The notes: generated by a model not told the origin, from the sequence alone. Positions 4,885-52,800 are shown, counted from the stretch's first letter. The stretch: DNA of 64,000 nucleotides from Haplodiscus bocki (GCA_965655095.1 OZ296650.1:14260001-14324000); one strand, 5' to 3'. A program made the numbers and translations.

Positions 4885-5332
4885 AACCTCGGCCGTTGAC
4901 TTTGTGAGAATTTTTTGCTTTTTTGCGCTCGTATAAAATACACCGCATTACTGGATTGAATCGAGAAGGTTTAGGTAATATGTTTGAGCATAAAAGTTGG
5001 AGCTTTTTTGCTTTAAAGAAAATACCTGTATTGCACGGCCGTAATCGATCATATCACTTGTTTTTCACGTCTTGAAATACTTTGTTGAGAAATCATTAGC
5101 AAAAAGAACTTGAAAATGCCTAAGATTATTTTTGTCCAATCGTTGTGATTGGCTTACCATCACTGACATATGCATAAACATGATGGCTACTATAGTGAAA
5201 TTATTGCAATGTGACATTTTTCGCGGGATTCACAGCAGAAACTTTTTCCAAAAAAAACACGGCAAGTCACGTGCGCCGGAAATCTTTTCGCAATTAAGCA
5301 CTGCAAAAAACACCATGGCTCGATTGAGTCTC
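4885..5332 (+). repeat. Dispersed non-coding repeat (~440 bp), copy 1
   Basis: Colinear with 8676-9110: both start aacctc(g/a)gccgttga, share ggccgtaa..gatcatatcact.gttttt and aacttgaaaa, and end in ttgagtctc. Confidence 0.8.
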
Positions 5333-28719: not shown

Positions 28720-29100
28720 ATGGTTGTAATATTGGCGCCAGTTCACTCAACTTCCACCAGAGACCAGACACTTCGAGAAATCCTAATCCCAGTTATTCTA
28801 CAGTTGAACCATTTAATCAGAACCGAGTTCAATTTACCCCATCATTAAGAACGGAGAAAACTTAATAAAGAAACCAAAACAATCGTATGGCACCGCTTTT
28901 CGAACGAAACATAAACAAATTGTCGACCGAACAGCGGAAGTTCCAAAAATTCAGAAAATAGAACGACACCGTGAATAAACTAATGTGATGAAGAACGGTG
29001 GTCTTGTATTGCCAACAAAAAGGAATGCTTAGATCTTCCAACCGCTTCTCTACTGGGACGTTTTGTCGCAACATAACAAAAACTCCATTTCCACCTCTAA
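28720..29100 (+). pseudogene. Cryptic SGNH-like ORF0 remnant
   Basis: ATG at 28720, GGC GCC AGT TCA CTC = GASSL (28734-28748), IVWH (28882-28893) and VVLYCQ (~28998-29015). The motif order matches ORF0 at 47517. Confidence 0.7.
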
Positions 29101-30342
29101 TATAAAAGGAGTTATAGTAGCATCTGAGCCTCAGGCACTTATACCACTGCACCAGTTTAGCTTGTAATGTAGACTCCAGCATTTTTTTTGGACAAGGCAA
29201 TAGAAAACTGTAGTTGCAGTAGACAGAAAACTATTGAACAACTGATTCTGCCAACTGCATTTTGGCATTACCTGTCTTCGAGTAGCGGAATCTGGTATTG
29301 CGATCAATGTGCAAGTGAAGTGAAGAACCTTTTGATAAATGCAGCTGCATTGAAGGTTAAGAAAAAAGTACCAGAAGAAAAAATGACATGGACACAGCAA
29401 TCAACTATGCAAAAACGCTCTTAGATGATCTTCGCTACTTAGGAATCGCAAAACAAATAAAAATGGGCATATAAGAGGAAGGAACTTGGAACTGAATCGA
29501 GGAAAAAAGGGATCGAACGTTGAAAAGTCGTTTAGGACTTTGATATTCGAACAGGGTGCGAGGTATAGATTTAACTACAGGACAAATTACACCGTAAAAA
29601 GATCAATGTGATTGAAAAAGGCCCAAGTAAAACCACTGAGTTGAAAAAATGAATCAAAGGGTGCAGTTACCAATCTATGTAGAATGTTTGAAGTAGGCGT
29701 TAAAAAGTCAAGAACAGCCCGGAGGTTGGCGAAAATCTGATGCAGAACAAAACACCAGATAAACAACAGAGAGTTCTACTGACAACATTGAACAACTTGA
29801 AAATGGCGGTGTCTTGGTGGAATGACTTTAAAGGCTTAAATACGCTGAATGAGCTGTGTGAAAGAGCTTGATTGAACAAAAAGTTGATCAATTTCGGGAA
29901 TAAGGAGCAAAGGTTTTGATGATTGAGGAAACCGGAGTTTTCAATCGAATTGTTTACGGCAACAGAATGATCAGAGTAGGCAGTCGGACTGAACCTTTTT
30001 CACATAACCTATCAGAAAACAATTCGAACTCCTGTTCAGAAACTTCGTTAAGAGGGCGGCAACAAAAGGTCCTCGACCTGTAGGTATAATTCGAACAGGA
30101 AATGTCTTAGAGCACTTAGTAACGTTGACCTGAGCGAAAACAAAAAAAAATCAGTAACCACTCGGAGCCAAATTTGGCAATACATTGATTGATTTGACAT
30201 GGAACATTAAAACGATGACACTGACGACAAAAATAAAAGAATGCTGTTAAACTATTCAGTTCATTCACAAAACCTGCGGTAGCGTAGAGACACAACAATC
30301 CAAACTGTTTTGGCCAGAATACAAGATTATGTTTTCATAATA

Positions 30343-31122: not shown

Positions 31123-33419
31123 TAGCTACAGAAGCCTAATTTTGACTGATGAAAGAACAGTGCATTGGACGACCTTCTCAGAAATAAACCACGAGAAAAA
31201 ATTCTGTTGTTTTTTCAGACAAATAATTATCGTGACATTGTTTGAATTGTAACACCAAGAACCACATCGAGACCAGAAAAACACACCAATTTTCAAAAGC
31301 ACCTAATACTCAAACTTGGACCAGCAGGTTGTTCAGCCGAAGACACATTGAACAAACTGCATATTTTTATTTCCAAATCTGCCACTTAATGTTAATTCTT
31401 GAGCCATCAGTAACCTTCTTCGCGTCATCTCCTGGGAAAAAACCACCACAGAGTACTCTCAATGACTTTGCCTATATAGGGAGTGAGTCGAACAAAGGTG
31501 CGATTAAAGTACCGCCGTGGAAACTACCCAGACCTTCATGCTCATAAATTTACATTGCGAAGGTTTTTTCATCAACTCTACGAAAGTAGAAGAAAACTTG
31601 AAAAACGAGGACTGCTAATTGCGACCAAAATTTTGTCCCTATCCTTCAGTTTTGCCTCAGCAACCACGATTCAAAACCACTGAGCCAAAATCTCACTCAA
31701 ACAATTAATAAAAAGAGTAGAAACTGGAAAATTTTCAGGAGAAACAAGTCCGTAGGCAACCATCAAAGAGTATACAGAGCTGAGATAAAGTAACGAAACT
31801 AAGACCAGGAACCACCATGAAGCAGAAAAAATGATCCTTTGATTTTTTTAGTCTGAAACCAGAAACGGCTTAGACACGCATCAAAAAAGAACTGAAAGGC
31901 AACGAGACAAACCCGGCAATTGACTTAGCAAGGTTGGACGCTCAACAACAGACAACAATAAACAAAAGCGACGGCAACTTTATCGAGCTTAGTCCTTACA
32001 AACGACACGCCGGCAATCAAATTGTCAATAATAATTTCGAACATTAGGTCACTGTTGAAAAAGCATCGCTGAACACATAGGCTTTAGAAAGATTTTACAG
32101 ATGGATGTTGCTAAGTTGATAATACCTCAGAATTTGCACCATCACATTTTATTGCAAACAAGAAATTTTTGCTCTCTACCGTGAAGCAGAATTAGTGATC
32201 AAACAGAGAAAATGATGAAATTCCTGACCATTGGAAACGTGCTTTCACAACAGAAATACTAGAGTGTTATGAAGAGATCGCATCAACTACAAATTTGTGA
32301 GCTTGGTATCAGTTTGTAGCAAACAAAGGCAGAATTTTTTTGGGGAACAATTTATTGACTTTCTCGATCAAAAAAATCAACCCAAACAGAAGACTGCTAA
32401 AAACTTTATCTACTTACGGGATTGAGGGTGAAACACTCGATTGGGTGACCGCATTCTTGCCCAAACAGAGACAAACGGTGGAAGAGATGAAAAGTTCTTC
32501 TTTGAAAGCGATCGTGAACTTATCGGTCATCATCACACTGCCACCAGGATCTTTTCTTGAATCGAAAACTCTCAGCTGAACATGCACAATTTTAAAAGAC
32601 GAGTTCAGACACAGAAGCAAGGAAAACGATTTGGAAGAACTCTCATCCAGGTCCCAAGAAAGTCCACACCAGTTCATTTCATGGGAAAATTGCACAGTTT
32701 ATTGATGGGAAGTATCATGGATTTGATCAAAAAAAATTCTTTCGATTTCCAAACCCCCATCACAAAAGTTCAAAACGAGAAAGTGTACTCGCCAAACGTA
32801 CTCGCTGTAGCTTCATAAGTGCTCTTCAGTACCTTTCGGTGGACCATTCTTGCTTATCTCACTAAATAAAGTATTTTCACCCGAAGATAATTGATAAATT
32901 AAAAACCATGTGAGAGTATTTCACATAAAACCGGGAAATCAGAACATTAGTACACGTTATCCAATAGGATTTGGAAGAACAAACTTAAAATGGAATTGAA
33001 CTTTGGACACTTCAGCTCAATCTGAACATACCGCCTACCTTGATTTGACAGACAAACTGTACAATCTCAACCTCTGAACTTTTAAATAAAACGAGTGTTC
33101 AATTTATGCAGGATCTTTTACATAGGACAATTATCCCATTTTGTGTACGGGGCGATTGTTTATCTCAGTAGGGGTTTTTTTCTTGACTACCCTCACAAAT
33201 TGATCAGGACCACTGCAGCCATTAATGAATTTAGCAAATGGCCTTTTTTAGTGGAGATACAATGTAATCAGACACATGAACGACATTCTCCAACCTTTGA
33301 AAGGGCTGTTTCTCGCTTCCATTCTGTAAGTTCCTGTATGGAAACTACATACTCTTGACCATCTTTTCCAAAAGTTGATTTTCAAAACCTGTATTTGGGA
33401 CCAATCCTTGGCTGAATAT

Positions 33420-36400
33420 GTATTTATTGTGTTGTTGTTGTTACTCTCTATTAGCAGCAGAGTTTGTAGTTTACCACCCAGTCAGAAGTGTGCTGGTTTT
33501 AATGTTTCTGAGTCGTTGGGGTCGTCTGAAATTTGACATGATGGACAAAAAATTGACAGCAATTCAAACTGGCAGAATAAAGTTGTTAACTCTTCAAAAG
33601 ACAAGACTTTGTTCCTCAATGTTTTTTTTTAAATGACGCCCGGTATTCTTTACGCTAGAATCCCATGATCCACATAAATGTAGTGTTAATGGTGGTATGA
33701 CATTCAAAATCATGTTGAGACCTGCTTTGAGTACTTTTTGTATTGCTAGAAGTAGACGTTTTGCACCATGAAAATTGCTGCCATTTTCTGTATTCAGATG
33801 CGTCGGACAGCATTGACGAGAAACAAACTCCATAGAGCAGCTATGGAAGCCGGTGTTGTCAAGATTTTTACTGCTCCAATGTCTACTGCTTTGCTCGAAA
33901 AGCGGACGAAGAGTGTCCGATAATATTTTTCTACAATTTGTGGCGCAATATAACAACGGAACGGTCCTGCAAAGTTTAGATTTACACGTTGAAACGCTTA
34001 TGATGGAGGGTAGAGTCATACTTTTCGGAAGGTTGCCCATCAGAGGGAAATTTGGTTTCACTGAGAATGTACTGCACTGCACACAATCTGAAATTGTTCT
34101 TCTCACTGAGTCTCGACAACTTGGAATCTAAAATCTCGTCTTATTGAATGCTACAACTTGACTGGTTCGTCCGCGAAACGTTAAAATCACTAATTTTGCG
34201 AGCCCACTGTGTTCCGATATACCTCGTTGATATTTTGTTTCATCGGAAAAACATGCTTGCACCAGCTTTCCGCCACCACAGAGAACGCCGTTATTTAACA
34301 AGGAAAAAAAGCAAAACAGTTTGTTTTCGGAAATGGTTTGTGTTGATGTTTGAAATTTTTTCGTTTCATCTACGAAGAACTCTTCTTGCTCCTATCTCAG
34401 AAGTGCCATCGCAATATCAGATATTTCGGAGCACGTTTTGTAATCGGAAAACTTTTTGTTTTGTTTCTAAAGTCGTGAAATAAGGTTTTTCACGTGAACA
34501 ATTGTGGGAAAAAGTGGAAATTGCATGTGGTGAGCTTAATTACATCTTGATCAGCTTTTGTGTTCAGGATTGTTTTGAATAAAATTTTTTGACTTCTCTT
34601 TGTTTCTTCGTTTGTATCACCTATCGGTTGTGGATCTGGGAAGTTTCCAGTGACTGACCATTTTGGCCGGTGTCACCAAATAATCACAAGATTTCATACG
34701 TTTTGTCTCTAAACCACGTGCAGCATTATCAGCGGTATTCCCTTCCAAAATCACGTGCTGCCAGTTCAATTCTAGCTCACTCAGCAACTCTGAAAATCTA
34801 TTAGCTACAAACGTGGACCGATTCTCGTGATAATTAACATATAACAAATGTTGAATCGGTCCATCCATGGATAGAATCAATTGTGTTGCCTAATTGTTCT
34901 AAAGAGTTTGAAACTTATTTCAATAGTCGAAAGTCAAGTGAAGCGGTGAAGATTTTTAGTCCTGGTACCCTCTACATTTTCAGTAGAGCAACTTTAGTTT
35001 TTGCTGCAAGCAATGAAAATTGCTGGCTGCTATTAGGTGTTACAGCAAGGTCACTGAAAGCAAGTAACTTTATTTTATCAGAAACACCTTTGAATGAAAA
35101 AAGTCTCTTCGATTTTATTTCTCCAAGGCTCACTACTTCAGACCACCAACTAATTTGCATTCAAACTAAATCATATGATAGTATGTCATCACAATCAATA
35201 TTGGCTTTCCAGGACTGCTGCATCACCTGTTTCAGGAAAATCTTCATTGATGATAGATAGCCCGGCGGATTGAAAATCTTCGATAAGTCATTGAGAATTC
35301 GTCGTTTTCTTATATGTTTGTCTGAGAAAGGTGGGTTATCAAGGTATAAAAATTTCGAAAGAATTGTGTCAGATAATGGGTTCCAAAACGTCCTTAGTGT
35401 TTTTATGGTCTGATCAATAGCAAAAACTTCAAAACTGTCATTAGATTCGCGGTACTTCCTTGGAAGATCAAGAATAACTGTAGGTGTGTTGTTCGAAGTC
35501 CACTTACCGAGATCAAACTGAGTTTGTTCTAAGGTGTCAATGAGACCCTTTTGCAATGTTTTAGCTTCAGAGGTAGAAAATGCGCTTGTATTCATTTCAG
35601 CGACGCAATAATGGCGTCAAATTGCTTGTTGTACCGGTAGCAGAACGTTGGAGCTGCACTTTTAGTCAAAGAGTGAATCGAATGATATGATGTGCTAGTT
35701 AAAATCTAAATACATAATGTCATTTGATAAGTGTCGGAAACTTGTGTGTCATCAATCTCCTCAAAAATTTAACAAAAGTTTCATCTTCTTTTGCCAAAGC
35801 TACATGTCTTTACTGTTTTGAAACGCTTGTGCACATTGCGATTTTGAGACACTTAAAGCGGATGAGGATGTCGCAATTGTCATCTTGGAAATTGGGCGCC
35901 AGCATTTCTTTTTGTTGTGGAGTCAAATTGTTGCTCGCGCATTTATCCTTCTTGTGATAAATATTTGAGTACTGGAAAGCTTTCGGTTTCCCAAAACTTG
36001 CAGGGTAAGTTTTCGGTGTCTTTAGAAGTCATGATGGTTGTGTAGCTAACGACCAAATCTTTGGTTTCTTCCACTACACGTCCCGATACAACCCAACCTG
36101 AAATTGAATCCCTCGGAAACAAAAATATTGTCTCTGAATTTCTTGTCAAAGGGGAGGTCTTACAAAATGTTGGCACCTAAAAGAAGGTCTATAATTTCAG
36201 GTGTTTCGATGTGGCGATGGGCAGGATCCAAATGGCGAACCCGTTTCGTATGACTAGTGTCAAATTTACCACTAGCATTGGCGTTGGTTAGACGAGAAAT
36301 GATTTTAGAATTTTTACAACGGAGTCATTCAGAGTTGTCGGTAGCAACAGTGTCAAAACCTAGTGTTTGGATAGTGGCTTGAGAGATTTTCGTTGGCAGC

Positions 36401-37960
36401 ATCAAGGCTTTAGCTTAGTCTGCCGTGATGAGGCGAACGTGAGGTCCAGTATAAAACATAGCACGCTGCTGCAACTGAGTGAGGCTAGGTTCGCGAATGA
36501 ATACTAGGGCCATTGACAACAGAACAGTGTCAACAGTACCTTGTTTACTGAAGTGTTTTGCGAAGTTGCGAGTAGGTTTTTCCATTTTTGAATACTTGCG
36601 TGAAATGTTTCGAGACGAAGAGTTTCCTTTTTAATTATCACAGGGTGTTGCATGTGTTTTTTTGTCAGGACGGTGTAGGAGTGTAAGATGTCCCAACCGA
36701 CTTCCTTTACAAGTGAATAGTTATTTGCATGTGTTGGACCAATGCCTTGTTTGAAAACAATCGAAACAAAGTTTTTGCCTTCGAATAGTTTGTGTCACTC
36801 TGTTAAGGTGAATCCTTTGAACTGTGGTCATGCTTAAAGTTTGTGAGATTCCTGGCAAAGTTAACATGATGATATGACAGCGGAGTATATTTGGATGGCT
36901 TGGTCCGTGCTCTGAGCAACAGTCGTCCCAGCGGATGGCACGTTTGCTTTAGCTTTGACCAATTTCAAGGCACAACTGAGAGTTTCCAAGACTCTGCCAA
37001 AATGTTTCCAAGACAGAAGATCTGTCCCCAAGTTGTCTAACTGGCATTGTTTGCGGGACTCTGGATCCATTTTTGGACAGAATCACCGAGTTTTTCAGAA
37101 GACTTTAAGTGCTCGTTTTATTCTCCCAAGGAGTTTACGCTGACCAATGCTGGGTTTTGTTTTCATTGAAGGCTGTGTCCAAATTTTCCGCAATTGAATT
37201 AGGACAACGCTGGTTTTGTTAGCGTTGCACCTAGTCAGCAATTCCTTGGCAAGGCAAGAATTTTGATCATTACTACTAATCGAAAAGGCCGAGTGGTTAG
37301 AGTCTCTTTCAACGCATGCCTTCAAGTAGTTTATTTTCTCACAATCTGTCAGGTTAGCGTTGCTGTCAACTGCTGCCTTGAAGAAATCCGAAAAATCATC
37401 CAATCAGTGTAGGAACCAGTCAAGTATGTGAGTTGTAATTTCGGTAGTCTGAGTTTGCTATGTGAGGAGTGCGAATCAACTGCGTGTAAATAAAAAAAAT
37501 AATGCGACGACAGTCAGTCAATATTTTGTATTTTTCATATATCGCTGATGATCTATCCATGGTGATACTTGCTGCGGTGTGAAAATCTGTTGATGAATCA
37601 AGTTCTGTGGAGAGATCATCCTGGTTTTCGAATGTCGATTTAATTTCGCCGTCAAGTTTTTGGATCATGTTAACTCCGTGTTGGAGGGCTTTAAGTAAGG
37701 CTTCTTCTTCAAAAGGTTTTGTTCGTCAGCAAAACTTCCTGAAAGAAAAGCATCATCTTTTTCTCCAAATTTTTCAATCGAGTTCTACGGTCACCACGGA
37801 CCATAGTGTTTCGCCCTTGATCAGTAATTGGCTGTATGGCTCCCAAGAAGTTTTCACCCTTGTGTAATTTATGATAGTGTGACGCAGATCTGTAAAAAAA
37901 CTTTTTCAGACTCCATTTGGTTGGGCCACCGATGAGCGAATCGTACAAAGACCATACCAA
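33420..37960 (-). mobile_element. Degenerate BEL/Pao LTR retrotransposon internal region
   Basis: Gag FKAAVDSNANLTDCEKINYLK and DPESRKQ, then GWVVSG / KFWETE, RT-Pao segment FDLGKWTSN..KRRILNDLSKIFNPPG, LLAFSD..LLAAKTKVA, FVANR..WQHV..NTADNAARG, and integrase CVQC..LMGNLP..ENGSNFHGA..GSWDSSVK. A tggtc PBS-like sequence lies at ~37950. Confidence 0.9.
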
Positions 37961-38899
37961 AGTTAAGAAGACTTGAAGAAAAAACTTTGTGTTACTCAAC
38001 TTTTAATAAAAATGTCAACACTTAACTTTCAGATTGGTGAACGATAAACGAATCGTCCGGCAACTAGTCTGAAAACAACTAAATTGGCAGAAAAAAGAGA
38101 ATTCACTCAGAAATTGTCCAAGGTAGCTTTTCTGTAAGAGCTCTTTTTATTTTGTTTCTTCTGTGGAGGCTTTATTGACTTCGTTCTGTTCTTCTGAGAG
38201 AGGGATGTCCTGGTATTTTAAAGATGGAGGACTATGAACAAAGAACTGATCTCGAAACAGGGGGGCTTATAGAGTTAGTTGTAATCAAAAGGCAAGGAAA
38301 TTCTTTTCGGTTTGCGTCTTCAAAGCGATTTCTCTGTTACACGCTTCACAACGAAATTGGCGTCTCGTAAATTGACAAATGCGTAGAGCGCGTTGCCTCT
38401 CTGACGTTATACAAGAGCTGCAATTCGATCTTTGTTTCTCAAACAAATGGTGGCAAGTTGCTTGGGGGTGGTGGAGTTGAAGTTATTGGACTGACTAGAG
38501 GTAAAGTAGGTTTTTATTTATGTGGTGCCAGATGATGATATTAGACATTTCTTTCAGCAAACTGCTTTCAAAACGATAGGATAGGCTAACAATGCTGTTT
38601 TAAGCAAAACAGTGAATGCATAGTGACTGAATTCCAAATACGGACACGTTGAAGGGCTGCCTGTCAGCGTTGTTAAGATTGTCAGCTGCTCTTCCGAGAG
38701 AACTGGCGCAAATAACAAATACAATTAGTGTGAAATGAACAACTGGGCACTTTTTGACAGAAAACTTTGGACATATTGATCATTTTTAGGTAGCAGACTG
38801 AACTAGGCAGAAGCCTATTTGACAGTTCCCACAAAAGTGACTCTAATTGTTTGCAGAGCTTTGTCAAGGTTCTGAAACTTATTTCCGCCATAACATCGC

Positions 38900-39700: not shown

Positions 39701-41768
39701 ATATCAATTCAAAGTGTTGTTCCGTAATGATTCAGATCGAAGAACCATTATGGATTGATAATTAACTGAATTAGTCAATAAGTTTTTTGAAAGTACAAGT
39801 TCAACAAACTAATTGAAATAACCAGTTCAGCTGAACTCCGAGTGGACCACAGACCGAAACACGCCTACTGCTGCATCCCGAAACTATTGCATTGTAATTG
39901 CCTTCGAACTTATTGCAGCAGCGAAAGCTAAAAAGGCCTTGCGAAAGTTTGCATCGGTTTCGACATCTCAAAAGCTTTCGACACAGAGAAAAGGGAAAAA
40001 CTCCAGGAGCTGTTAACAGCCAGAGGTGTGGACACTGGTAACGTCACGCTCTTGAAACAATTACTGGAGAACACCGCGCTCAACGTTAAATCTGGAAAAA
40101 TCATCAGAAGTACTTTTCAAACAGAACATTTGCGTCCCCCATGGGAAGGGCCTGTCACCCAAACCCCAGACTTTATCTAGAGGAAGCGTAGAAAGAAATA
40201 GAAGATGAAATCTGTAGCGGGATGGACCATAATCAATCTGGATGAAACTCAGCTCCTCCTGGTCACGATCAGGATTACAGAAAATCAAACTCCGCCACTC
40301 CTATCCGATCTTGAATAAGCAGACGATGTAGATTCACTTTTGCAATGATGAGGCTGACGTCAAACTAACCACTAACACAGTCGAAAAGGTCCTCCTGAAG
40401 TTCAACTTGTTCTTCAGCCGAACGAAAGCCGAATTTATTATCCACGAAGGTAGATCTGAAAAAAGTCAAAACGTTGGGTACCATTTTTGACGAGCCGCAA
40501 GAATCCAGCCCAAGACGACAGCTGGCCTCAATGGTTATGATAAAATCTCTCAAAAAAGATATGGCGAAACAGATTTATCAGTTCCAAAAGGAAGAATATG
40601 ATTTATAACACTTATGTTTGAGCAATCCTCTCATATAACTGTTCAACATGGTGCCTGGATAAGACTTTGATTGATAAAAATTGACGTCTTTCACAGAAGC
40701 ACCCCCACCCGAGACATACTCCATCACCACCCATTTGAAACCCGGGAAATATGTCCGGGCCTACTATATCGGGTACTTACGGGAACTATCTGGGTAACAG
40801 TCTGTTCCAAAACGGGTTTACGAGGGCCACGGCCAGACGTTTGTGACTCCACAAACAGCTGCTTGCTCTGATCTTTGAACTGACTTCTAAGATATGCGTC
40901 AGTGTCCCTAGTAGGGTTAAGTCTTGGAATCTTTCATCAACCGTAGACTATGCTTGCTCAGTGATGTCAGAAAAGAAACATCGTTCAGGTCTTTGTTTTT
41001 TTTGTTAAGTACTTCGTAATTTAAAAAATGGCAGAGTATATTAATTTCTGCAAGATTTGAAATTTGAATGTTTCGAGTTGAGTCGATTGCCCCCTTTTTT
41101 TTGAAGTGTCACGGCCCAAAGGTTGAAAAACTGAAAATTGTTTCTGTGGCCAATGGCGCGTACGCTTATATACTACTTTTCAACGCAGTAAATCGGCAGG
41201 AGTGAGATTTGAACGCCAGTGCTCTAAAGAGGAAAAAACATGTTGAACAACTCTATCACGAAACTGTTAACAGTACAAATGTTGGAGAAGGTTATGACAA
41301 CAAACTTTTGCTGTTTGATCTGTCGGGATCGTGGTGGATAAAACAAGTGTTGTTTTTTTTATTTGATGCCATAAAACAGCTGACTGTAAAAATGGTTGGG
41401 ATGTGTGAGTACCTGTCCGCAGTTTTAGAGCTCAATTCTTGTTGCACATTGAAACCGAAAACAATCTGGAAGGACACATTCTAGGGAAGCTGAAATTGCG
41501 GGAAGATTTAGTTTCTTGCATTGTTCAGCTTAAACGGGATGATAATTCGGGAGGAAACACCAGAAATGCCATGTGTTGTTTGGTTTGAAAATATCGGCGT
41601 TGTTCGGATGGCTTTTGCACTTTTTCTGTCGATAAACCAAATACCTCATGAGTTATCTGATTAGAGTAGTCTACTGTTAGCCACTGTGGAGCAACTTATT
41701 AAATACTGTCTTTTCAGGAATATGATTAATTCCGTGGCGGCCCCCTAATCTTTTCCCCTCAACGACAA

Positions 41769-41981
41769 ATGGTCCATATTCTTGGCGCTTCATCACTCTC
41801 CCGAGTCATCGAAAAAATTGACTACAACTCCAAGCGAACCCTGAAGAAAACAATAACAGCAATCCCTGGTCTTTCGTTCAATCAGAACAACAAAAACGAC
41901 CTCAAGGTTATTCCCACCTTGCTGTCAAAAGGAAGATTGTCAAAGATTTCCAAGAAGGAAATCGTCCCGTTTTCCTCGTGA
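41769..41981 (+). pseudogene. ORF0, N-terminal third of an SGNH-hydrolase-like protein
   Basis: MVHILGASSL...AIPGLSFN...KEIV aligns with MVFTLIGASSL...AEGGLSFN...LVIWHD of ORF0 at 47517, and breaks off just before the WHD motif. Confidence 0.75.
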
Positions 41982-43055: not shown

Positions 43056-45916
43056 ATGCAAGTACACCTACTGATGTGGAATGTTAGAAGTATGCTCGAT
43101 TTGAATCGACGAACAGCTTTATCAAATGCACTTGCCTTGCAACAATTCCACATCATTAGCCTGTGCGAAACTTGGCTAGTAGACACAATACCGAACAGTG
43201 GCCTTTTTCTTGAAAACCGGTCAATATTCCGTCGTGATCGACAACCTAAGCGAACCGGGAAATCGAGTCACGGTGGCGTACTAATCGCCGTCGACAGCTC
43301 GATACCCTGCAAAAAAATTACCGAGTTCAACGTTTTTGAAGACGTTGTGGCATTGTCTGCCATTTTTGTTCAGGTCATCTTTTAGTTTTATCGGTTTACT
43401 GTCCCCCTGAAAATAGTCCTTATCGATGGGCTAGCAGTAAATTTACCCACTTACTGCAAGAAATTGACAAGGTTCAACAACAAGACTACATAACAGAAAC
43501 CATCGTCACTGGAGACATCAACTTCCCGTTAACTGATTGGAACAGTTTCTCAAGCACGAGTGACTACGAAGACTCCATTGCTGGAATGTTCGTGAACAGC
43601 GGCTTCGAACAAATTGTTAGGAAAACAACAAGCGGCTCACTTGATCTTTGCCTGCTGAATATTCCAGAAAAAGTAGTTCGATGGTTTAGCAATACCTTTT
43701 TAATCAAAAGTTCCTTTCTTAATGGACACTTTCGCTCTGATCATGACCCTTTCTGTTTTCTTCAATATGCAAACGCCTTCCGTTAAAACAACCCAGACTC
43801 ACGCCTTTTCCTACTCAAGAGTGGATTTCAACAAGGTCAACAATTACATCATTGAAAACCCTTCTCACCATACTGCTATAGTAATTGCGACAAACTTTTG
43901 GAAACGTGGTATGAGTGGCTTCATGAAATCATGCTTGCAACAATTCCCATTGCAACAATCATAGAAGCAATCTCCCAATCTGGGTCACATCGCCAACATC
44001 TTGCATCATCAGAAAACTGAAGTCTCTACAACGCAAATAGACTTCTGAACCATCGCCTGCACTACGAAACAAAGTTAGAAGTCTAGAAGACCTGGTGGCA
44101 TCAAAGATCAACGAAGATCTCATGCTATACGAAGAAAGTATTTTCAAATCTCGACAATTTAGCACGATCCAAAGATACCTACGCTATATTCGTCGGCCTG
44201 ATCCCATACCGACCGAAATTTGCCATGAAAACTCAACAGCTAACGCGGACGAAGAGAAGAGCGTTCTTTTTAATACTTTCTTCTGTAGTGTTTTTTTTCG
44301 AAATCTAACGACCATGAAGATGAATGTACTGCTGAAATCACCGAAATACTTGCGATATTGGAAGACCAATCGATAGAACCAAACTCCTCAAATGACAACA
44401 TTAAAAATCTACTTCAAAACCTCAACCCCCAAAAAACCTGTGGACCGGACAATCTGCCGAACATTATGCTCAACAAATGTTCTGAATCTCTAGCAAATTC
44501 TCTATCCGTTATCTTTAGAACTTTCTATGATAAACGATGCTTTCCCACCTTCTGGAAAAACTCCAATTTTTGAAGATACGGATCGATCACTGGTAAAGAA
44601 ATATAGACCAATATCACTCCTCTGTAACATATCCAAAGTTTGGGAGAAAATGATCGAGAAAACCATTGCTGAAATCTTTCTTCCGAAAGTTGACCCTTGT
44701 CAGTACGGTTTTGTTCCGAAGCGTTCCACCCTCTTGCAACTCCTAGCGTACCCAGATGAAATTTACAGAACCCTGGACTCTCAGGCAAAATTCCTTGCAA
44801 AGCTGTACATTGACTTTGCCAAAGCTTTTGACAAGCTGGACCATAAACGCATCCTGGAAGCTCTACACTCAACTGGAATTCCAAATAAGACAGTTGACAT
44901 TGTGAGAAGTTATCTGGACAATCGAATGCAACGTGTGAAAGTTGGAACAAAGAATCACCGGAATTACCAGTAACAAGTGGAGTCCCACAAGGATCAATTT
45001 TGGGCCCACTCCTCTTCCTTGTTTTCGTGAACAGTCTGCCAAAAGTCGTTACCACCAGTAGCATCTACATATTCGCCGATGACACCAAAATCATGTCTTC
45101 CAACCCGATGGAACTACAAGAAGATTTAGATCGATTTGTCCACTAGTGCGACCAGAACAAAATGGAAATCAATGTTGAAAAAACCCGTTTGATGATGTTC
45201 CGCGGCGATGACTCTCAAAAATTCAGAATGAAGAACGTAAACCTCCAAACATCTCCATTCGAGCGAGACCTCGGCGTCGTATTTTCGGAAGACCTATCGT
45301 GGGTTGAACAAACAACGATTAGATGCAACAAAACCTATCGAGCCTTTTTCAATCTAAAAAGGAACACCTCACCACTGAATTCGTTGTGTTCACGCCTAAA
45401 TATGTATTGTGGGTATGTCGTACCAATTTTGACCCACTGTTCTCCAGTCTGGCATACAAACAGGACATCCATGAAAGAACTGGTACAGAAGAGAGTAACG
45501 AGATGGATTTCCAGAACGTCTCAAGTAGACTACAAAACCCGCTTGATCCAACTGAAGCTGTTACCAAATAATTTATACATCGAAATGCACGATTTACTAA
45601 ATTCTGTAAAATAGTAGCTGATCAATACAACTTCGACTGGAAAAGGCACATCACCCCTATTGAAAAAAGCTGCCTGAGAACAACATCATCCCCGTTTTAT
45701 CTACCAAAAATAAGGAGGAGCAAAAGCAAAGACAATTTTTGGTACAGAACTCTTCAACTTCCCCGAAGACTATCGAGAACTGTAAATTTACAAGAACTGT
45801 GCTACCTGAAAGAAGGTATCCAAGATTATTACTGGAAGTTCTTCATCAACAACTTTTGTGAAGAAAACATGTGCTCATGGCGAATGAACTGTCAATGTCG
45901 AACCTGCTCGCCATGA
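43056..45916 (+). pseudogene. LINE ORF2 (apurinic endonuclease and reverse transcriptase), disrupted
   Basis: WNVRS, LCETWL, HGGVLIAV, TGDIN, SDH; [37 protein letters not shown]; C-terminal CSWRMNCQCRTC. Confidence 0.95.
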
Positions 45917-46599: not shown

Positions 46600-47367
46600 A
46601 AAAAAATTTCTGCTCCCCTGTTCGTTGGTCGCAATAATGTCTGGAGACATGATTGCCACCAAAAATCTGTCCAATAATTGAAAAACTGCAAATGGCATGG
46701 AAAAGCACTCTTCTTCCTCCAATGTGCTCCAACAAATCAAGGTCAAACTAACCGAGAAACTGGTTCAGATAGCCTTTAAAAAAGACCTCCGTAGCTCTGC
46801 ATCGGAATTGTTTATGAACAAAACTTGTTGTAAAATCCAAAAGTACCTTGCAATCATGACCAAAGGTAGTCATTTGCTACCTGAAAAAAAAAACAGAATG
46901 GGGTCCGAAAAAGCCGCCTCTTGAAGGAATACATCTATATTTTTTAATCAGTTCTTTGCTGGCGTCTATTGAGAGAAAACCTCTGACCCGTTAAAATTTG
47001 AGCGTATTGGGTCAACTCCAACATCACCTCCATTCGAAGCGCTGAAGAGAATCTTATTTAGCTGGAACTAAGTAACGCAAATAGTCTTGATCGACTTGGC
47101 AAAATTGTTCTCCGAAACTACGCGAAATCATTGACAAAGTCCATACAGCTCAAAATTAAACAGCGATAAGGAAAAGACCTATCCTCAGAGTTTACGAAAA
47201 CAGCAAGGTTACGCCCCTTCACAGAGAAGATAGAAGCAAGATAGACAGAAATCAGCAATGAAAACTTTTTGTTGCTTTTCAAACTGCTTGCCAAGCTACA
47301 AAGTCTTAAAAAGAACAGATCGGCAACTATACTGCTTTGACTCTACATCAACCAAATATGCCATAAG
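46600..47367 (+). pseudogene. Old LINE ORF2 fragment, left part (insertion target of LINE B)
   Basis: KIQKYL..IFFNQFFAGVY resembles LINE A IQRYL..LFNTFFCSVF. It ends KNRSATILL*LYINQICHK at 47367. Confidence 0.7.
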
Positions 47368-47516
47368 CCTAATTGTTGTGATAAACTTATTAAATAGATT
47401 TTTCCCTTCCTTTTTCACCGCGTTGTTTGTTTATAGATAAATTGCGCGCTAGAGCCTGGACTTATTCTTCTATCCCAAGTCCCGTCGCTCTAGCCGTAGA
47501 CGGGTGAAGTCTGCTT

Positions 47517-48129
47517 ATGGTGTTTACACTGATTGGTGCCAGCTCTTTGAGAAACTGCAAGACAGCTTTTCGATCAGAGACTCTTTTCAGTCGCATCGAC
47601 GCCGAGGGAGGCCTTTCCTTCAACCCTCGAAGCAAGTGCAAACTTGCCCAAGAGTGGCTCCAAGGAGAACTTACTGGAGCAAGTGGATTGGTTATCTGGC
47701 ACGACGCTGTCAATAATACAATCAACAGCCACGAAAAAAAACGACTTCCAACCGTGTCCCATTGTAGAGTTTATCCAAACCTTAGTATCGCTGAGATCAC
47801 GCATCACAGCAATAGTTTACATACAACGAAACGACACTGATAACGTGTTGACAGCACTCAAAGAAACCGGCATTGACATCATCGACATCGAATCGAAAGT
47901 TGACTTGACGGACAAAGAATTCGAATCTGACCTCCGAAAAGTCCATCCAAAAGTTACAACGGAATTGAAGGTATTGCAAGCCGTTACAGACCATATTAAA
48001 GAAGTGCTATCATCCAACATCACAGTTGCCCAACAGGTGAAGAAGAAAAAGAACAACCGGCCAAATCAGCGACAGCGACAACGCTTCCAGAAAAGAAACG
48101 CAGGTAGTCCTCTAATTCGAGGTCTCTGA
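47517..48129 (+). pseudogene. ORF0: SGNH/GDSL-hydrolase-like protein (~203 aa once a +1 in the A8 run at 47734-47741 is removed) with a basic C-terminal tail
   Basis: IGASSL (block I-like Ser), GGLSF (block II-like), IWHDAVNN (block III-like), KVHP (block V-like His) and tail KKKKNNRPNQRQRQRFQKR. The fold assignment is by motif order only. Confidence 0.7.
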
Positions 48130-48250
48130 TCTCCTCAGTGCCTCGAGAGAAGGATCTCTGTTGGCGCGAACTTGCTCAGTGCCTCGGGTCTGATCTCTGT
48201 TGGCACGCGCTTGCTCAGTGCCTCGGGTTCCTGATCTCTGTTGGCGCGAG
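48121..48250 (+). repeat. About 3 tandem 39-41-bp monomers between ORF0 and ORF1
   Basis: ctcagtgcctcg at 48134, 48175 and 48214; gatctctgttggc at 48153, 48192 and 48233. Confidence 0.95.
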
Positions 48251-48285
48251 AAGAATCTCCTAGCAATTCTGACCTCCGCCATAAT

Positions 48286-49316
48286 ATGCCGAACATCATG
48301 AGTCATAACCACAATACGAGATTGACTTCGACCAAGTACCCTTGTGGTGCATGCGCAGGTGAATGTAAAGACGGCTCGGTAGCATGTATTCTGTGCAATT
48401 CATGGTACGACGCAGGTAACTGCTCAGGATTACCATCAAGCATCTTGATGGCCATGTCAAAAACCTCTGGACTGGTGTGGCTGTGCAAATCTTGCGAAAC
48501 GAAGGGTATGGAACGGTTGTTGAAAGACGAGAAGCAAATTGACGCTAAGGCGCAGGAAACGATTGTTGCAAAGGTCATGGAAGACAAACTCGATGAGATT
48601 AGAGACACCAACACGAAGCTGATAAACTGTCACTTTTCCAACAAAACCTTGAAGCTAAACTTGAAAACTTACTTTCAGAAGACCGAAAAAGCGCACAGAG
48701 CTGGTCCGAAGTTACCCAACGGAATGCTCCCTTGGTGAAAGGTTTGGGAACCATCATGAAAGAGACGATTGAGAACGAAAGACTGGAACAAGCAGATCAA
48801 GAAAAACGGGAAAAAAACGTCATCCTTCATCGACAACCTGAGAGTGACAAATCGGAGGCCAGTGCGAGAGCTGGAGATGACATCAAGTTTTTCAAACAGC
48901 TCACCGAAGACGTACTAGGTATTGGTGACCTCAAACCAACAAAAGCAATCAGACTTGGAGCAAAGAAAACATCAAAGGACAGCGACGGTACTACTGCAGA
49001 ACGAGTGAGTTCAAGACCACTGAAGATTGTATTGCCTTCCAAGGAGGATCGGGACTTACTTTTCAGAAATTTGAGAAAGTTGAGAGCAGCAGACAAATCA
49101 TTCGCTTCAATCAGCGTTTCATACGACCTCTCGCAAGATCTGAGGAAGCAGATCAAGTTGAAAATTGAGGAGGCCATAAACAAAGATGGAGAAAATGCAA
49201 AAAACTACATGTACAGAATGAGAGGACCTCCGAACAGACTAGAGGTACAGAAACTGAAGCGGAAAGTGAAACTGTCAGCGAAGAGCCTAGACGATGCCTT
49301 CGTCGACAATCCTTGA
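48286..49316 (+). pseudogene. LINE ORF1 (PHD finger, coiled coil, RRM-like domain), one frameshift at ~48620
   Basis: CGAC..CILCNSWYD..C..WLCKSC (Asp at the PHD His position), REKNVIL, AIRLG..RPLKI and ISVSYDLS. Confidence 0.88.
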
Positions 49317-52175
49317 AGTTTCTTTTTTCCAATACTGATGCGATGACAAACAAAAAGGAGGAAATCAGTGCAAGGCTAGTAAGTGAGAAGCCGGATCTTT
49401 TCGGCCAGATGGAAATAAAACCAAAAAAGCATGGCTTTGTGTTGGAGGAAGCAGATATCGCTTTTGAAGGATATGACGCATTCTACAGCAAACAAATTAA
49501 CAACAAGGAACATCGAGGTACAATAGTATACGTTAGGCAGGATATTGGGCTTCAGTCTAGTCGAGTTGATATCAACGGATGCCCAGAAGACACTATTCTT
49601 GTTCAACTTTGTAACGGAAAAAAAGAAAAAATCTTGTTCGGGTGCGTCTATCGTCACTGGAATTCAGATACCCAAGAGCAACAGGCCTTAATGAACACTC
49701 TTAGAGCTGTATCACACATGAATTTCACGCACGAAGTTATTGTAGGAGATTTCAACCTCCCGAAAATTGATTGGTCCTTGAACTGGACACCGCTTAGTGA
49801 GAACAGTAACGAGCACTCATTCACTGAATTGGTAAGGGACTGCTTCTGGCACCAACACGTCCACTTTGCAACAAGAGGCAGAGGATCTGATGACCCTAGC
49901 ATTCTTGATCTTGTCTTCACGGATGCAGATACAGAGGTCGACGACATGCAGTGCCAAGCTCCTTTTGGAAAGAGTGAACATTCGGTGATTTCTTTAGAAC
50001 TCTCCCAGGTGGAAAGAACACGCTGCAAAAAAAGGAACAAGATGGAAGTATGCTAAGGGAGACTACGAAAGCATGCGCGAGGTACTGTCAAACAACCACT
50101 GGGTTGATGTACTCTCTACTGCCCCAAGTGTCAACGAAGCATGGAATCTTGTAAAAGGAAGAATCAGCGCAGCAGTAGAAAAGTTTGTGCCAAAAGCCAT
50201 TTCCGGATCCACAAAACAGTTTTCGGTTCCCTTGGATAAAGACCTCTTACAACAAATCCGAAAGAAGAACAGCCTCTGGAGAAAATACCTCAGAGTCAAA
50301 ACAAAAACAGCTTACAACGAGTTCTGCAGAGCGAGAAATTACATCCGGAGTCGAACATGGTCCAAAGCTAGAGAAATTGAAGACGAAATTGCCCGGGAAG
50401 CAAAACGAAACCCGAAGAGATTTTGGACCTTTGTGAACTCAAAAGTTAAAGCCAGAACTGGCATAAGTGACCTCGTCTTGGAAGACGGAGAGGTAGTATC
50501 CTCAGACACCAGAAAGGCTGAAGTCTTGAATACCTACTTCAGCAGTGTTTTTGTAGAAGACAAAACCCCTCCCCCGGAAATTGACGAATTTGTTGTCGAC
50601 TCATACATTGAGGAGACCCTCACAACTGAATCAGCCATCAGAAAGAAGTTGGCAGAACTAAACAGGACAAAGTCACCGGGCTTTGACGAAATCCATCCTC
50701 ATGTGCTTGCCGAACTGTCAAAAGTTTTGACTGAACCACTGCAGATCATTTTTTCAAGCACCATTGCTGAAAGCGAGCTACCCAAGGACTGGAAGGAGGC
50801 GAGGGTGACAGCACTCTTCAAGAAAGGTGACAAAAAGAAAGTGGAGAACTATCGACCGGTCAGCCTAACATGCATCGCATGTAAAGTACTAGAAAGCATT
50901 ATCAGAGATGATATCATTTCCCACATGACGTCGAACAACTTGATTTCAGATAGACAATATGGCTTCGTGAAAGGAAGATCGACGAGTCTACAATTGCTGA
51001 AAGTCTTAGAAGAGTGGACACAGATTCTTGATAGAGGAGGAGGCATTGACTGCGTTTATTGTGACTTCCAAAAAGCCTTTGATAAGGTTCCATAGAGGAG
51101 ACTGATGGCAAAGATCTTGTCATACGGAATTCGAGGAAAGTTATACCGATGGATAGAAACTTTCCTAACAAACAGGAAGCAACATGTCGCTGTCAACGGT
51201 CAAAAATCGTCCAAAAATCTAGTCTTGAGTGGAGTCCCGCAAGGAAGCGTTCTAGGGCCACTTCTTTTTGTGATCTTCATAAACGACCTACCTGCAGCTG
51301 TTGAGAATGAAGCATGGATGTTCGCAGATGATACAAAGATCTACCAAGAGGTGAACTGTAAGGAAGATGGTGAATCGCTTCAAAATGACCTCTACAGGCT
51401 TGAAGATTGGAGCAAAAAATGGCTACTGCCGTTTCATCCAAAAAGGGCAAAGATCCTAAAGTTTGGAAGAGCCAAGAAGCTTGAACGAGAGTACTACGCC
51501 GAGCGAGGGAAACTACTACCGATCTCAAGCGATAATACTGAGACGGACTTAGGAGTGACATTTGACTCAGACCTGAAATTCGAAAAACACATTGTGAATA
51601 AAGTCAATAAAGCCAATCGATTGGTTGGCCTCATCAAACGGACCTTTCAATTGGATATTTTGAAGTTCAGGTTCCTTTTCCGAGGCATTGTTAGACCGCA
51701 CCTAGAGTACGCCACTTCTGTATGGAACCCCACGTCAGTCAAACTCCAAAACCTCATCGAGAATGTGCAAAGAAGGGCTTCAAAACGTGTACATGAGTTA
51801 AAAGACCTATCTTACGAAGAGAGACTGAAAAAACTTGACATGCCAACCTTAGCATATAGACGCTTGAGAGGAGATATGATTGAAGTCTTCAAAATGCTTA
51901 CCAACAACTCTGGGTACGATCAATCTGTGACGACAAATCTGCTGACCCGTGAGGGGCACAATAGGACCAGAGGCCACGCATTGAAGCTGAAAATGAATAA
52001 AAGTCGAACTAGCCTTAGGAAGCATTTCTTCACACAGAGGGTGGTGAAAGAGTGGAACAACCTCCCTAGAGAGGTTATCGAATCAGTTAACACCACTACA
52101 TTCAAATCAAGGCTGGACAAGTGCTGGGAGAAAAGAAAATTTATGTTGAGACCAACTCAGATGACCTTGCAGTGA
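49313..52175 (+). pseudogene. CR1 ORF2 (APE endonuclease and RT), nearly intact
   Basis: VGDFN, ILDLVFT, SEH; NYRPVSLT, QYGF, DFQKAFDKVP, GVPQGSVLGP, FADDTK, RLRGDMIEVFK, TRGH, FKSRLDK. A +1 frameshift at the A-run 50027-50033 and a TAG at 51093. Confidence 0.97.
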
Positions 52176-52219
52176 GGTCCAGTAACACTTGCAGTGAAAG
52201 AAGTCACTAGCATTGGGAG

Positions 52220-52247
52220 CTGTGAATAGAGGACTACCTGCTCACAG
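52220..52247 (+). other. 3'-terminal stem-loop of LINE B
   Basis: ctgtga-atagaggactacctgc-tcacag, ending 13 nt before the element end. CR1/L2-group LINEs typically carry a 3' stem-loop recognised by ORF2p. Confidence 0.65.
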
Positions 52248-52260
52248 TACTGAACAGATG

Positions 52261-52800
52261 AAGTACGACAACTAGACTGCAAAAACTCTGGGCGTGCAGT
52301 ATCTTGACTTCCGAAAGCTTTCTAATAAATGCTTCATGATGTCTTTCTGTGAAAAAAGCGAGCATGCAGAAGGAGCAAAGGTTTTGAAGCTTATCAACTC
52401 ATAAGCAATTTGTCAAAATCAAAAACAACAAATAGATCTAACAGCATTGAAAGGAGTCGTGAATATCAACGATGTATCTTTTGCCCTCTTCCTTTTTTCG
52501 TCTACATGAAGCTTTTTTGTCTACTGTGTTTGATATCCCTCGCCGAATGCCAGTTTGACGTAGAAGTAAACTCACATCAAAGAAAAATCTGAAAGAAGCT
52601 TACGCCAACGGAATTGGCACGAACTTCTTGTAGAACAGAATTGGCACGAACTCCTTGTAGAATGGACAAAACCAGAAAGCGGACCAAAATTTCGTGGGCA
52701 GATCAAAGTCATCTGAATCCTCCCCAACTGCGGATCCAAGCTAGACAAAATGACATTTTTGAAACTGTGTTGGCACCACTTCGAAACAGTCTACTCTGAA
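52261..52800 (+). pseudogene. Old LINE ORF2 fragment, right part
   Basis: KYDN*TAKTLGVQYLDFRK (RT YLDF motif), then QRCIFCPLPFFVYM (decayed [10 protein letters not shown]). Confidence 0.7.

Follow-up and report, generated by a model that had tools for sequence, protein, structure and literature searches.

The stretch of DNA analysed here (the window) comprises 64,000 nt from Haplodiscus bocki (GCA_965655095.1 OZ296650.1:14260001-14324000), and the element under study, a CR1-like long interspersed nuclear element (LINE), occupies positions 47365-52262 on its plus strand. Three-frame translation of 47300-52400 yields three cistrons on that strand: open reading frame (ORF) 0, a PHD-like ORF1, and an ORF2 with an APE endonuclease and a reverse transcriptase (RT). 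An initial annotation, made from the sequence alone, had proposed a three-ORF LINE at 47368-52260; the element is real, and its ends at 47365 and 52262 lie no more than 3 bases from those coordinates. The same annotation had named beforehand four outcomes that would speak against its view of ORF0 (no predicted SGNH fold, homologues mostly unlinked to LINEs, an in-frame fusion of ORF0 to ORF1, or a layout already catalogued), and the analyses reported below returned none of them, the last having been judged against the literature searched. The features of the element are listed here.

47365..47397, plus strand: 5'-terminal leader of 33 nt, ending in AG and containing no ATG; it recurs in diverged LINEs.
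47365..47516, plus strand: 5' untranslated region (UTR), free of ATG; its 5' end was set by comparison with contig L001, and the first ATG is at 47517.
47517..48129, plus strand: ORF0, a predicted SGNH-fold, esterase-like protein with a C-terminal helix and a basic tail, frameshifted at 47734 (translation; AlphaFold2 model).
47734, plus strand: ORF0 lesion, a one-base length difference in an A-run; the pieces are 47517-47741 (frame 0) and 47728-48129 (frame 1).
48130..48285, plus strand: spacer between ORF0 and ORF1, 156 nt, free of ATG and with a second in-frame stop (sequence).
48286..49316, plus strand: ORF1, with a PHD finger at about 48343-48495, a helical region and an RRM-like C-terminal part (Pfam PHD; RRM-like by inspection).
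48620, plus strand: ORF1 lesion, a 7-bp length difference.
49294..52175, plus strand: ORF2, APE endonuclease and reverse transcriptase (Pfam).
49322, 50027 and 51096, plus strand: ORF2 lesions, one-base frameshifts at the first two positions and a stop at 51096.
52176..52262, plus strand: 3' UTR, containing a hairpin and ending in one CAGATGAA unit (comparison with L001).

The limits of the element follow from a second copy, LINE B, on contig L001. Pairwise alignment of this copy with 47365-52262 gives 97.1% identity across 4905 bp with the same ends, while the flanks of the two copies are unrelated, the L001 copy adjoining an aconitase gene; position 47366 is also a break point in many contigs of DNA run X1. 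Because the identity runs exactly from 47365 to 52262 between unrelated flanks, ORF0, whose 5' end is 152 nt from the 5' end of the element, sits within the retrotransposed unit. LINE copies are made from RNA by target-primed reverse transcription, and ORF0, ORF1 and ORF2 therefore share one full-length RNA. On L001, ORF0 and ORF2 (959 aa) are intact and ORF1 is frameshifted; comparison with L001 and the DNA run reveals that the private lesions of the window copy hit all three ORFs, and this copy is a dead representative of a CR1-like LINE of approximately 4.9 kb. The initial annotation had described an ORF0 of about 203 aa with its own start and stop and a set of quoted motifs. The start (47517, opening with MVFTLIGASSL), the stop (48129) and the motifs were recovered, but the reading frame between them is broken in this copy, and the intact 203-aa ORF0 is found in other copies, namely in P0003, the ORF0 protein encoded on L001, and in 11 of the 15 cluster members listed. 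Substitution density between the two copies is similar throughout, at 0.024 in ORF0, 0.028 in ORF1 and 0.027 in ORF2.

The proposed PHD-type ORF1 and APE-RT ORF2 downstream of ORF0 are both borne out by Pfam. ORF2 matches Exo_endo_phos_2 (E = 1.9e-11) and RVT_1 (1.5e-10 and 2.9e-12), and the PHD match of ORF1 has E = 0.098 in the window copy, 0.0016 in L001 and 0.0045 in L003, a contig whose ORF1 is 38-40% identical to the one described here. The end of ORF1 overlaps the start of ORF2 by 23 nt, as compared with 41 nt in the related element of contig L011. The 3' end reads ...ACAGATGAA, without poly(A), and the CAGATGAA unit occurs once in the window copy and twice in L001. An APE-RT ORF2 and a poly(A)-less 3' end with a short direct repeat are features of the CR1 group, an octamer-repeat tail being known for CR1 (PMC2612034).

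ORF0 belongs to a sizeable protein family. A search with the C-terminal ORF0 piece retrieved P0003 (203 aa, 94% identical), and a HMMER search with P0003 against 1.84 billion cluster representatives, clustered at 50% identity, yielded 259 clusters with E <= 1e-3, 79 of them with E <= 1e-10. The median length is 200 aa, with 93 of the 149 best representatives falling between 180 and 235 aa; the sole match longer than 300 aa (P0061, 839 aa) was excluded as repetitive sequence without a match to the family profile. Aligned with one another (alignment A1), 64 full-length members that share 22-41% identity with P0003 have the consensus MVxIxGASSL ... PGLSFNP ... IWHDxINNS ... H ... AIVYCxR ... HP ... 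E, followed by a Lys/Arg-rich tail, and contain near-invariant, family-specific residues at W61, H62, D63, H72, Y101, R104 and E149. The non-canonical GAS and WHD motifs to which the initial annotation had drawn attention are kept across the family and are not peculiar to one copy. The members derive from ENA and Logan assemblies, one NCBI assembly and one JGI sample, and no member has a name, a curated-source accession or a precomputed Pfam domain in the databases searched. Homologues were also observed on short contigs of marine environmental samples, namely L015 (JGI sample 3300018986) and L009 (a TARA metagenome scaffold); the L015 homologue would attest to transcription if that JGI sample is a metatranscriptome. 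Judging by these alignments, ORF0 is a conserved accessory gene of the element and a member of a large family of constant length.

The SGNH fold suspected for this protein emerges clearly from structure prediction. The AlphaFold2 model of ORF0 computed with alignment A1 has a mean predicted local distance difference test score (pLDDT) of 92.5 and a predicted template modelling score of 0.80; a single-sequence model (pLDDT 43.9) was discarded as unusable. The model displays a three-layer alpha/beta/alpha, flavodoxin-like fold with five parallel strands. In an exhaustive structural comparison (VIA) against 48,161 PDB chains, the best 50 matches are all SGNH/GDSL proteins, with Z between 8.3 and 12.1, root-mean-square deviations of 2.9-4.2 A and 142-166 aligned residues spanning model residues 1 to approximately 165. 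They include the C-terminal domain of OatA (6vjp, Z 12.1), acetyl xylan esterases, PAF-AH (1bwp, Z 10.5) and the OSK domain of Oskar (5a4a, Z 9.2). The top Foldseek matches are likewise SGNH/GDSL proteins, with the domain-swapped esterase of the zebrafish LINE ZfL2-1 (4c1b) at rank 49; a feature search of the ESM Atlas produced no usable match and a shape search weak bacterial matches only. ORF0 is accordingly modelled as an SGNH-hydrolase fold that begins at residue 1 and extends to about residue 165, a long helix (residues 146-179) and a Lys/Arg-rich tail.

Most of the residues that define SGNH hydrolases can be placed on the model, with the geometry of the active site read from its topology. 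Block I corresponds to G-A-S-S-L at residues 7-11, right after the strand formed by residues 3-7 and at the start of helix 9-17, with S9 present in 58 of the 64 members. The Gly of block II is G32 (60 of 64), after strand 2, and block III lies after strand 3 in the motif W-H-D-x-I-N-N, where either N66 (49 of 64, with Ser in 13) or N67 (62 of 64) would be the equivalent Asn. In block V, H143 (61 of 64) is located in the loop preceding the last helix. From this arrangement we infer that S9 would be the equivalent of the nucleophile and that G32 and N66/N67 would be those of the oxyanion hole; E149 (58 of 64) and D63 (59 of 64) are candidate substitutes for the Asp usually found in block V.

In 8 LINE contexts and 3 contexts of BEL/Pao long terminal repeat (LTR) elements, which comprise every ORF0 homologue with enough flanking sequence, ORF0 is located at the 5' end of the retroelement, and the LINEs that carry it in this first position differ in their ORF1 type. 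Representative contexts are as follows.

L002: an ORF0 about 40% identical, then ORF1, APE and RT.
L003-L005: ORF0, then a PHD ORF1 and APE.
L011, fully intact: ORF0 of 199 aa, ORF1 of 399 aa with PHD and CCHC knuckles, and ORF2 of 958 aa.
L013: ORF0, then a decayed LINE.
L007: ORF0 as the first ORF inside the LTR pair 6137-6260/14480-14603 of a BEL/Pao element with DUF1759, Pao and integrase.
L006: ORF0 adjoining a BEL/Pao polyprotein.

Between ORF0 and the next ORF there are 1-10 in-frame stops in all seven lineages compared, with spacers of 24-372 nt. The description of ORF0 as a free-standing first cistron is upheld by the stops and spacer that precede a separate PHD-type ORF1 in all LINE contexts, and by the lack of any genuine member above 300 aa among the 149 best representatives; a fusion of ORF0 to ORF1 by readthrough was rejected on account of the multiple in-frame stops. 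As a side observation, ORF0 and the next ORF share the same frame in five of the seven lineages (L001, L003, L006, L007 and L013, not L002 or L011), which may be due to chance (binomial P of about 0.045 by our own calculation).

The ORF0s of L001 and L011 are 40% identical while their ORF2s are 25% identical, the ORF0s of L011 (a LINE) and L007 (a BEL/Pao element) are 42% identical, and the ORF2s of LINE B and L002 are 47% identical. The ORF0 tree is star-like, and its only supported pair (LINE B and L002, support 98) matches the likeness of their ORF2s; the tree fits a single origin of each label and does not show exchange between LINE and BEL/Pao elements. The occurrence of ORF0 in two retroelement classes speaks for its transfer as a module, with the tree giving neither date nor direction. 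The notion of a modular 5' cassette, put forward in the initial annotation, is hence sustained as regards the occurrence of ORF0 in different element types, but lacks the backing of a resolved tree.

A second property of ORF0 concerns its start codons. The 5' UTR contains no ATG, which makes the AUG of ORF0 the first on the RNA. From there to the ORF1 AUG, ATG triplets in any frame were counted and compared with the expectation from dinucleotide shuffles, with the following outcome.

Window copy: 0 ATG in 766 nt; 10.2 +/- 2.4 expected, 0 of 1000 shuffles as low.
L002: 0 ATG in 758 nt; 9.5 expected.
L003: 0 ATG in 834 nt; 11.9 expected.
L011: 1 ATG in 677 nt; P = 0.001.
L013: 0 ATG in ORF0 and 4 in the spacer, 819 nt in total; 11.1 expected, P = 0.002.
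L001: 3 ATG in 765 nt, none of them found in the window copy; 11.6 expected.

Control stretches of equal length downstream contain 7-18 ATGs, the copies linked to LINEs have 7-13 occurrences of CAT, the reverse-strand triplet, and ORF1 is not ATG-poor. The depletion extends to the encoded proteins, 47 of the 64 family members having no internal Met (0.25% Met), and to the other frames, where ATG is under-represented relative to synonymous-codon shuffles (a pooled count of 2 versus an expectation of 17.0, with no shuffle as low). Furthermore, six of seven lineages have a pyrimidine at position -3 relative to the ORF0 AUG, a weak initiation context. An AUG-free stretch from ORF0 to ORF1 behind a first AUG in weak context is the textbook hallmark of leaky scanning, and ORF1 is probably reached in this way, past ORF0.

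The 5' UTR and the spacer contain further elements. The 33-nt leader recurs upstream of ORF0 in L002 (69-101, 1 mismatch) and L011 (5751-5783, 4 mismatches), despite the proteins of these elements being only 25-47% identical to those of the 47365-52262 element. In DNA run X1 the leader is covered roughly 57 times as deeply as the body of the element, and many contigs part ways right after 47397. Two readings are available for the leader, namely a 5'-terminal element under strong constraint and a spliced leader that was retro-copied. Beyond the leader, the entire 5' UTR of L002 (69-227) is far closer to 47365-47516 than the coding regions are to theirs (protein identity of about 40% for ORF0 and 47% for ORF2), a likeness that would reflect either strong constraint on the UTR or a recent exchange of 5' ends. 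The spacer carries a tandem repeat at 48153-48249 with a 39-41-bp unit in 2.4 copies. A special RNA structure in the spacer of this element was rejected, its predicted fold being no more stable than that of shuffled sequence (z = -0.8).

Under the reading we favour, the full-length LINE RNA would carry three cistrons, with ORF0 first. ORF0 would be translated from the first AUG of the RNA, in its weak context, and the subunits that skip this AUG would scan on through approximately 770 nt without another AUG and start at ORF1, an arrangement expected to produce little ORF0 protein (ORF0p) and more ORF1 protein (ORF1p). The ORF2 AUG lies within the overlap with the end of ORF1, and initiation of ORF2 would therefore rely on a different mechanism, as in other LINEs. 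By analogy with the esterase of ZfL2-1 ORF1p, ORF0p would most likely be a Ser-His esterase or deacylase, or else a lipid- or membrane-binding factor in the assembly or trafficking of the ribonucleoprotein (RNP), and its basic tail may bind RNA or drive nuclear import. Taken together, we consider it likely that 47365-52262 is a dead CR1-like LINE with a three-cistron RNA in which a free-standing, SGNH-fold ORF0 comes first and ORF1 is reached by leaky scanning. A wider proposal is advanced tentatively, as possible rather than probable: that ORF0 is a deeply diverged branch of SGNH enzymes confined to retroelements (CR1-like LINEs with two or more ORF1 types, and BEL/Pao LTR elements), in which it would serve as a portable first cistron whose AUGs have been eliminated, allowing a single leader-capped RNA to supply ORF0 and ORF1 alike by leaky scanning.

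Several observations weigh against this interpretation in one or another of its parts. At the sequence level, no SGNH match was obtained for ORF0 in Pfam (ORF0 pieces, P0003 and the 64 members; GDSL/SGNH families at E <= 0.1), neither phmmer against PDB nor the family profile against PDB returned an SGNH chain, and hhalign of the family against E. coli TesA gave a probability of 0.14, that is, no link. Position 8 of block I is Ala in 61 of the 64 members where Asp is expected (GAS versus GDS) and the Asp of the block V DxxH motif is absent, the residue three positions before H143 varying among A, R, Q and K; on both counts, catalysis by ORF0 is uncertain. As regards translation, the LTR-linked copies show a weaker depletion of ATG (L006, P = 0.03; L007, P = 0.06), the AUG context of the next ORF is not uniformly strong, and three RNA-seq runs with the same species label contain 0 reads on the element, a result that we do not count as a test. 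Lastly, the dN/dS comparison that the initial annotation had suggested was made by aligning the two copies in register, skipping the extra base of the window copy, and gave pN/pS values of 0.58 for ORF0 and 0.64 for ORF2, which derive from small counts and are mildly below 1.

The missing block V Asp and the GAS of block I might also be accounted for if ORF0p had an SGNH fold without enzyme activity and contributed RNA binding or scaffolding to the LINE RNP through its basic tail, in the manner of Oskar OSK or insect PAF-AH homologues. Non-catalytic SGNH proteins are known (PMC3905857), the OSK domain figures among the structural matches, and the Lys/Arg-rich tail after the fold is conserved. 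The Ser, Gly, Asn and His are nonetheless kept in 49-62 of 64 diverged members, which would be unexpected had catalysis been lost. SGNH enzymes that work with a Ser-His pair exist, and we regard an inactive ORF0p as rather unlikely, if well worth bearing in mind. The mixed AUG context of the next ORF leaves room for ORF1 being reached by another route, be it reinitiation, an internal entry site or promoter in the spacer, or trans-splicing of the leader to generate a separate ORF1-ORF2 mRNA. The spacer repeat resembles those that LINE promoters sometimes have, the leader is a possible spliced leader, and unconventional initiation is known for LINE ORF2s (PMC3894237). Such routes, however, give no reason for avoiding ATG in all three frames of ORF0, at synonymous sites as well as in Met codons, across lineages 35-40% identical, and the fold of the spacer is unremarkable; we deem them distinctly unlikely.

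Two further explanations concern the status of ORF0 itself. The shared frame in five of seven lineages would be expected if ORF0 were an N-terminal domain of ORF1, as in esterase-type ORF1s, separated from it by decay or joined to it by stop readthrough, but every same-frame case has 2-10 intervening in-frame stops, the frames differ in the fully intact L011, and a search unrestricted in length found no genuine fusion-sized member (>300 aa), making this account very improbable. The view that ORF0 arose by chance, or was captured from the host, and does nothing for the element could draw on the lack of annotation, name or Pfam family for any member; a large conserved family of constant length with near-invariant residues, a confident fold prediction, the same position in many element lineages and a pN/pS that matches that of ORF2 all contradict it, and we find it barely credible.

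Esterase-type ORF1 proteins of LINEs were reportedly recognised by Kapitonov and Jurka in 2003. Esterase domains occur as parts of ORF1p in CR1, L2 and RTEX LINEs and in Penelope-like elements (PMC3905857), and an instance of solved structure is compared here, ZfL2-1 ORF1p (PDB 4c1b). In this protein, which has the complete Ser-Asp-His triad, is weakly active in vitro and binds lipids, a coiled coil, an arginine-rich motif and an esterase follow one another (Schneider et al. 2013, PMC3905857). ORF0 and ZfL2-1 ORF1p have in common a CR1-group LINE, a position upstream of the APE-RT gene, the (predicted) SGNH fold, conserved Ser, Gly, Asn and His (assigned from topology in ORF0), and an arginine-rich stretch. 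In addition, H62 of ORF0 (60 of 64) lies four residues before N66, the spacing of the transposon-specific H191/N195 pair of ZfL2-1 (PMC3905857), and Y101 (62 of 64) lies in strand 4, where S228, the partner of H191 in ZfL2-1, would be expected; the H62-N66 spacing hints at kinship of ORF0 with the known LINE esterases. The differences are nonetheless substantial. ORF0 is a separate cistron beside a PHD-type ORF1, whereas the ZfL2-1 esterase is a domain of a single ORF1p directly upstream of ORF2; in ORF0 the fold is N-terminal and the helix and basic tail come after it, whereas in ZfL2-1 the coiled coil and arginine-rich motif precede the esterase; and ORF0 lacks the DxxH Asp, has GAS in block I and has no detectable match in sequence to 4c1b or any Pfam GDSL family.

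Stand-alone genes of this superfamily are also known from bdelloid rotifers, in which a GDSL esterase forms ORF3 of Vesta LTR retrotransposons and GDSL ORFs occur in Athena elements (Rodriguez & Arkhipova 2017, PMC5408684). These resemble ORF0 in being extra SGNH/GDSL genes found in different retroelement classes and read as a shared module. The bdelloid genes, however, lie downstream of pol and can be recognised as GDSL by HHpred, whereas ORF0 comes first and is not so recognisable by sequence; and no link of the bdelloid genes to LINE ORF1/ORF2 or to leaky scanning is described (PMC5408684). A survey of the Jockey superfamily reported esterase ORF1s from no more than two vertebrate subgroups and PHD-type ORF1s from many other subgroups, with no element combining the two types (Metcalfe & Casane 2014, PMC4120745), and all layouts listed for vertebrate CR1-group elements in a survey of 2026 have either one ORF or two (PMC13343379). 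The ORF1s themselves, comprising a PHD finger, a helical region and an RRM-like part here and PHD with CCHC in L011, match described CR1/L2 types. With regard to translation, leaky scanning is described for polycistronic viral mRNAs, for instance sobemovirus ORF1/ORF2a and avian reovirus S1 (PMC3791421, PMC2978376). The viral mRNAs share with this LINE a weak first-AUG context and a downstream cistron reached by scanning, which for the LINE is our inference; they differ in that the LINE is a cellular retrotransposon whose AUG-free stretch comprises a whole 200-codon gene plus spacer, and in that its case is made from sequence alone.

The initial annotation had not recognised the layout as a described one, and the literature searched, with Repbase and Dfam lying outside that search, indeed yielded neither LINEs with three ORFs or an ORF0 esterase nor leaky scanning in non-LTR elements. 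What is already known is the domain type and its link to retroelements; the novelty lies in an esterase-like gene that forms a first cistron of its own next to a PHD-type ORF1, in a permuted order that places the tail at the C-terminus, in motifs that diverge from the canonical ones and in a coding sequence devoid of internal AUGs. That the known LINE esterases are fused to the remainder of ORF1p is one reason why their role in retrotransposition has been hard to settle. Because ORF0 is a gene of its own beside a PHD/RRM-type ORF1, the esterase-like and ORF1 functions would be genetically separable, and, if this holds, the esterase role in retrotransposition could be tested apart from ORF1. 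The finding that ORF0 also heads BEL/Pao elements points to a function useful to retroelements generally. The AUG-free body of ORF0 constitutes a testable signature of leaky scanning, which, if true, would be a translation strategy new for LINEs and a new answer to the problem of multi-ORF LINE RNAs. At a practical level, a profile of this family, which has no name, Pfam model or annotated member in the databases searched, would improve transposon annotation.

A minor observation concerns possible long-range pairing within the RNA. The end of ORF0 (48100-48114) is perfectly complementary over 15 nt to the 3' UTR hairpin loop (52227-52241), for which we estimate a chance expectation of about 0.01. 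L002 likewise contains the 11-nt core GGTAGTCCTCT together with its complement (810-820 and 5134-5144), but there the first pairing arm lies just past the ORF0 stop, as opposed to within the coding sequence in the 47365-52262 element. The complementarity points to a conserved RNA contact that would bridge, over a long range, the ORF0 end and the hairpin loop of the 3' UTR.

Other ORF0 relatives in the window were sought by running the family profile against its six-frame translation. This detected copies where tblastn of the ORF0 pieces against the window had returned no other copy, and identified the following features.

41769..41978, plus strand: N-terminal fragment of an ORF0 homologue heading a divergent LINE with a PHD-like region, APE (43056-43385) and RT (44494-45614).
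28722..29050, plus strand: probable relic of a decayed ORF0, heading a third, decayed LINE (profile E = 0.18 at 28849-28911, plus motifs).
38110..38779, minus strand: decayed ORF0 relic upstream of a decayed BEL/Pao LTR retrotransposon (three collinear profile fragments, E = 7e-4 to 8e-3).

Homologous ORF0s had been proposed at 41769 and 28720. The first is secure, with a profile match at 41730-41978 (E = 4e-18) that covers profile positions 1-59 only; the RT of the LINE it heads (RVT_1, 1.8e-15) is 32-33% identical to the ORF2 of L001. The second is only probable, its marginal profile score being accompanied by three collinear motifs detected by eye (IGASSL, IVWH and VLYCQQKG) and, downstream, by a PHD-like CxxC region (29200-29421) and an RT relic (32211-32558, E = 3e-6). 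The minus-strand relic, absent from the list given in the initial annotation, has its profile fragments at 38779-38410 and is followed on the same strand by DUF1759 (37403-37095, 3e-5) and Peptidase_A17 (35595-35161, 1.7e-6); a search for LTR direct repeats around it found none. Including the ORF0 relic, this decayed BEL/Pao element spans 33594-38779 on the minus strand.

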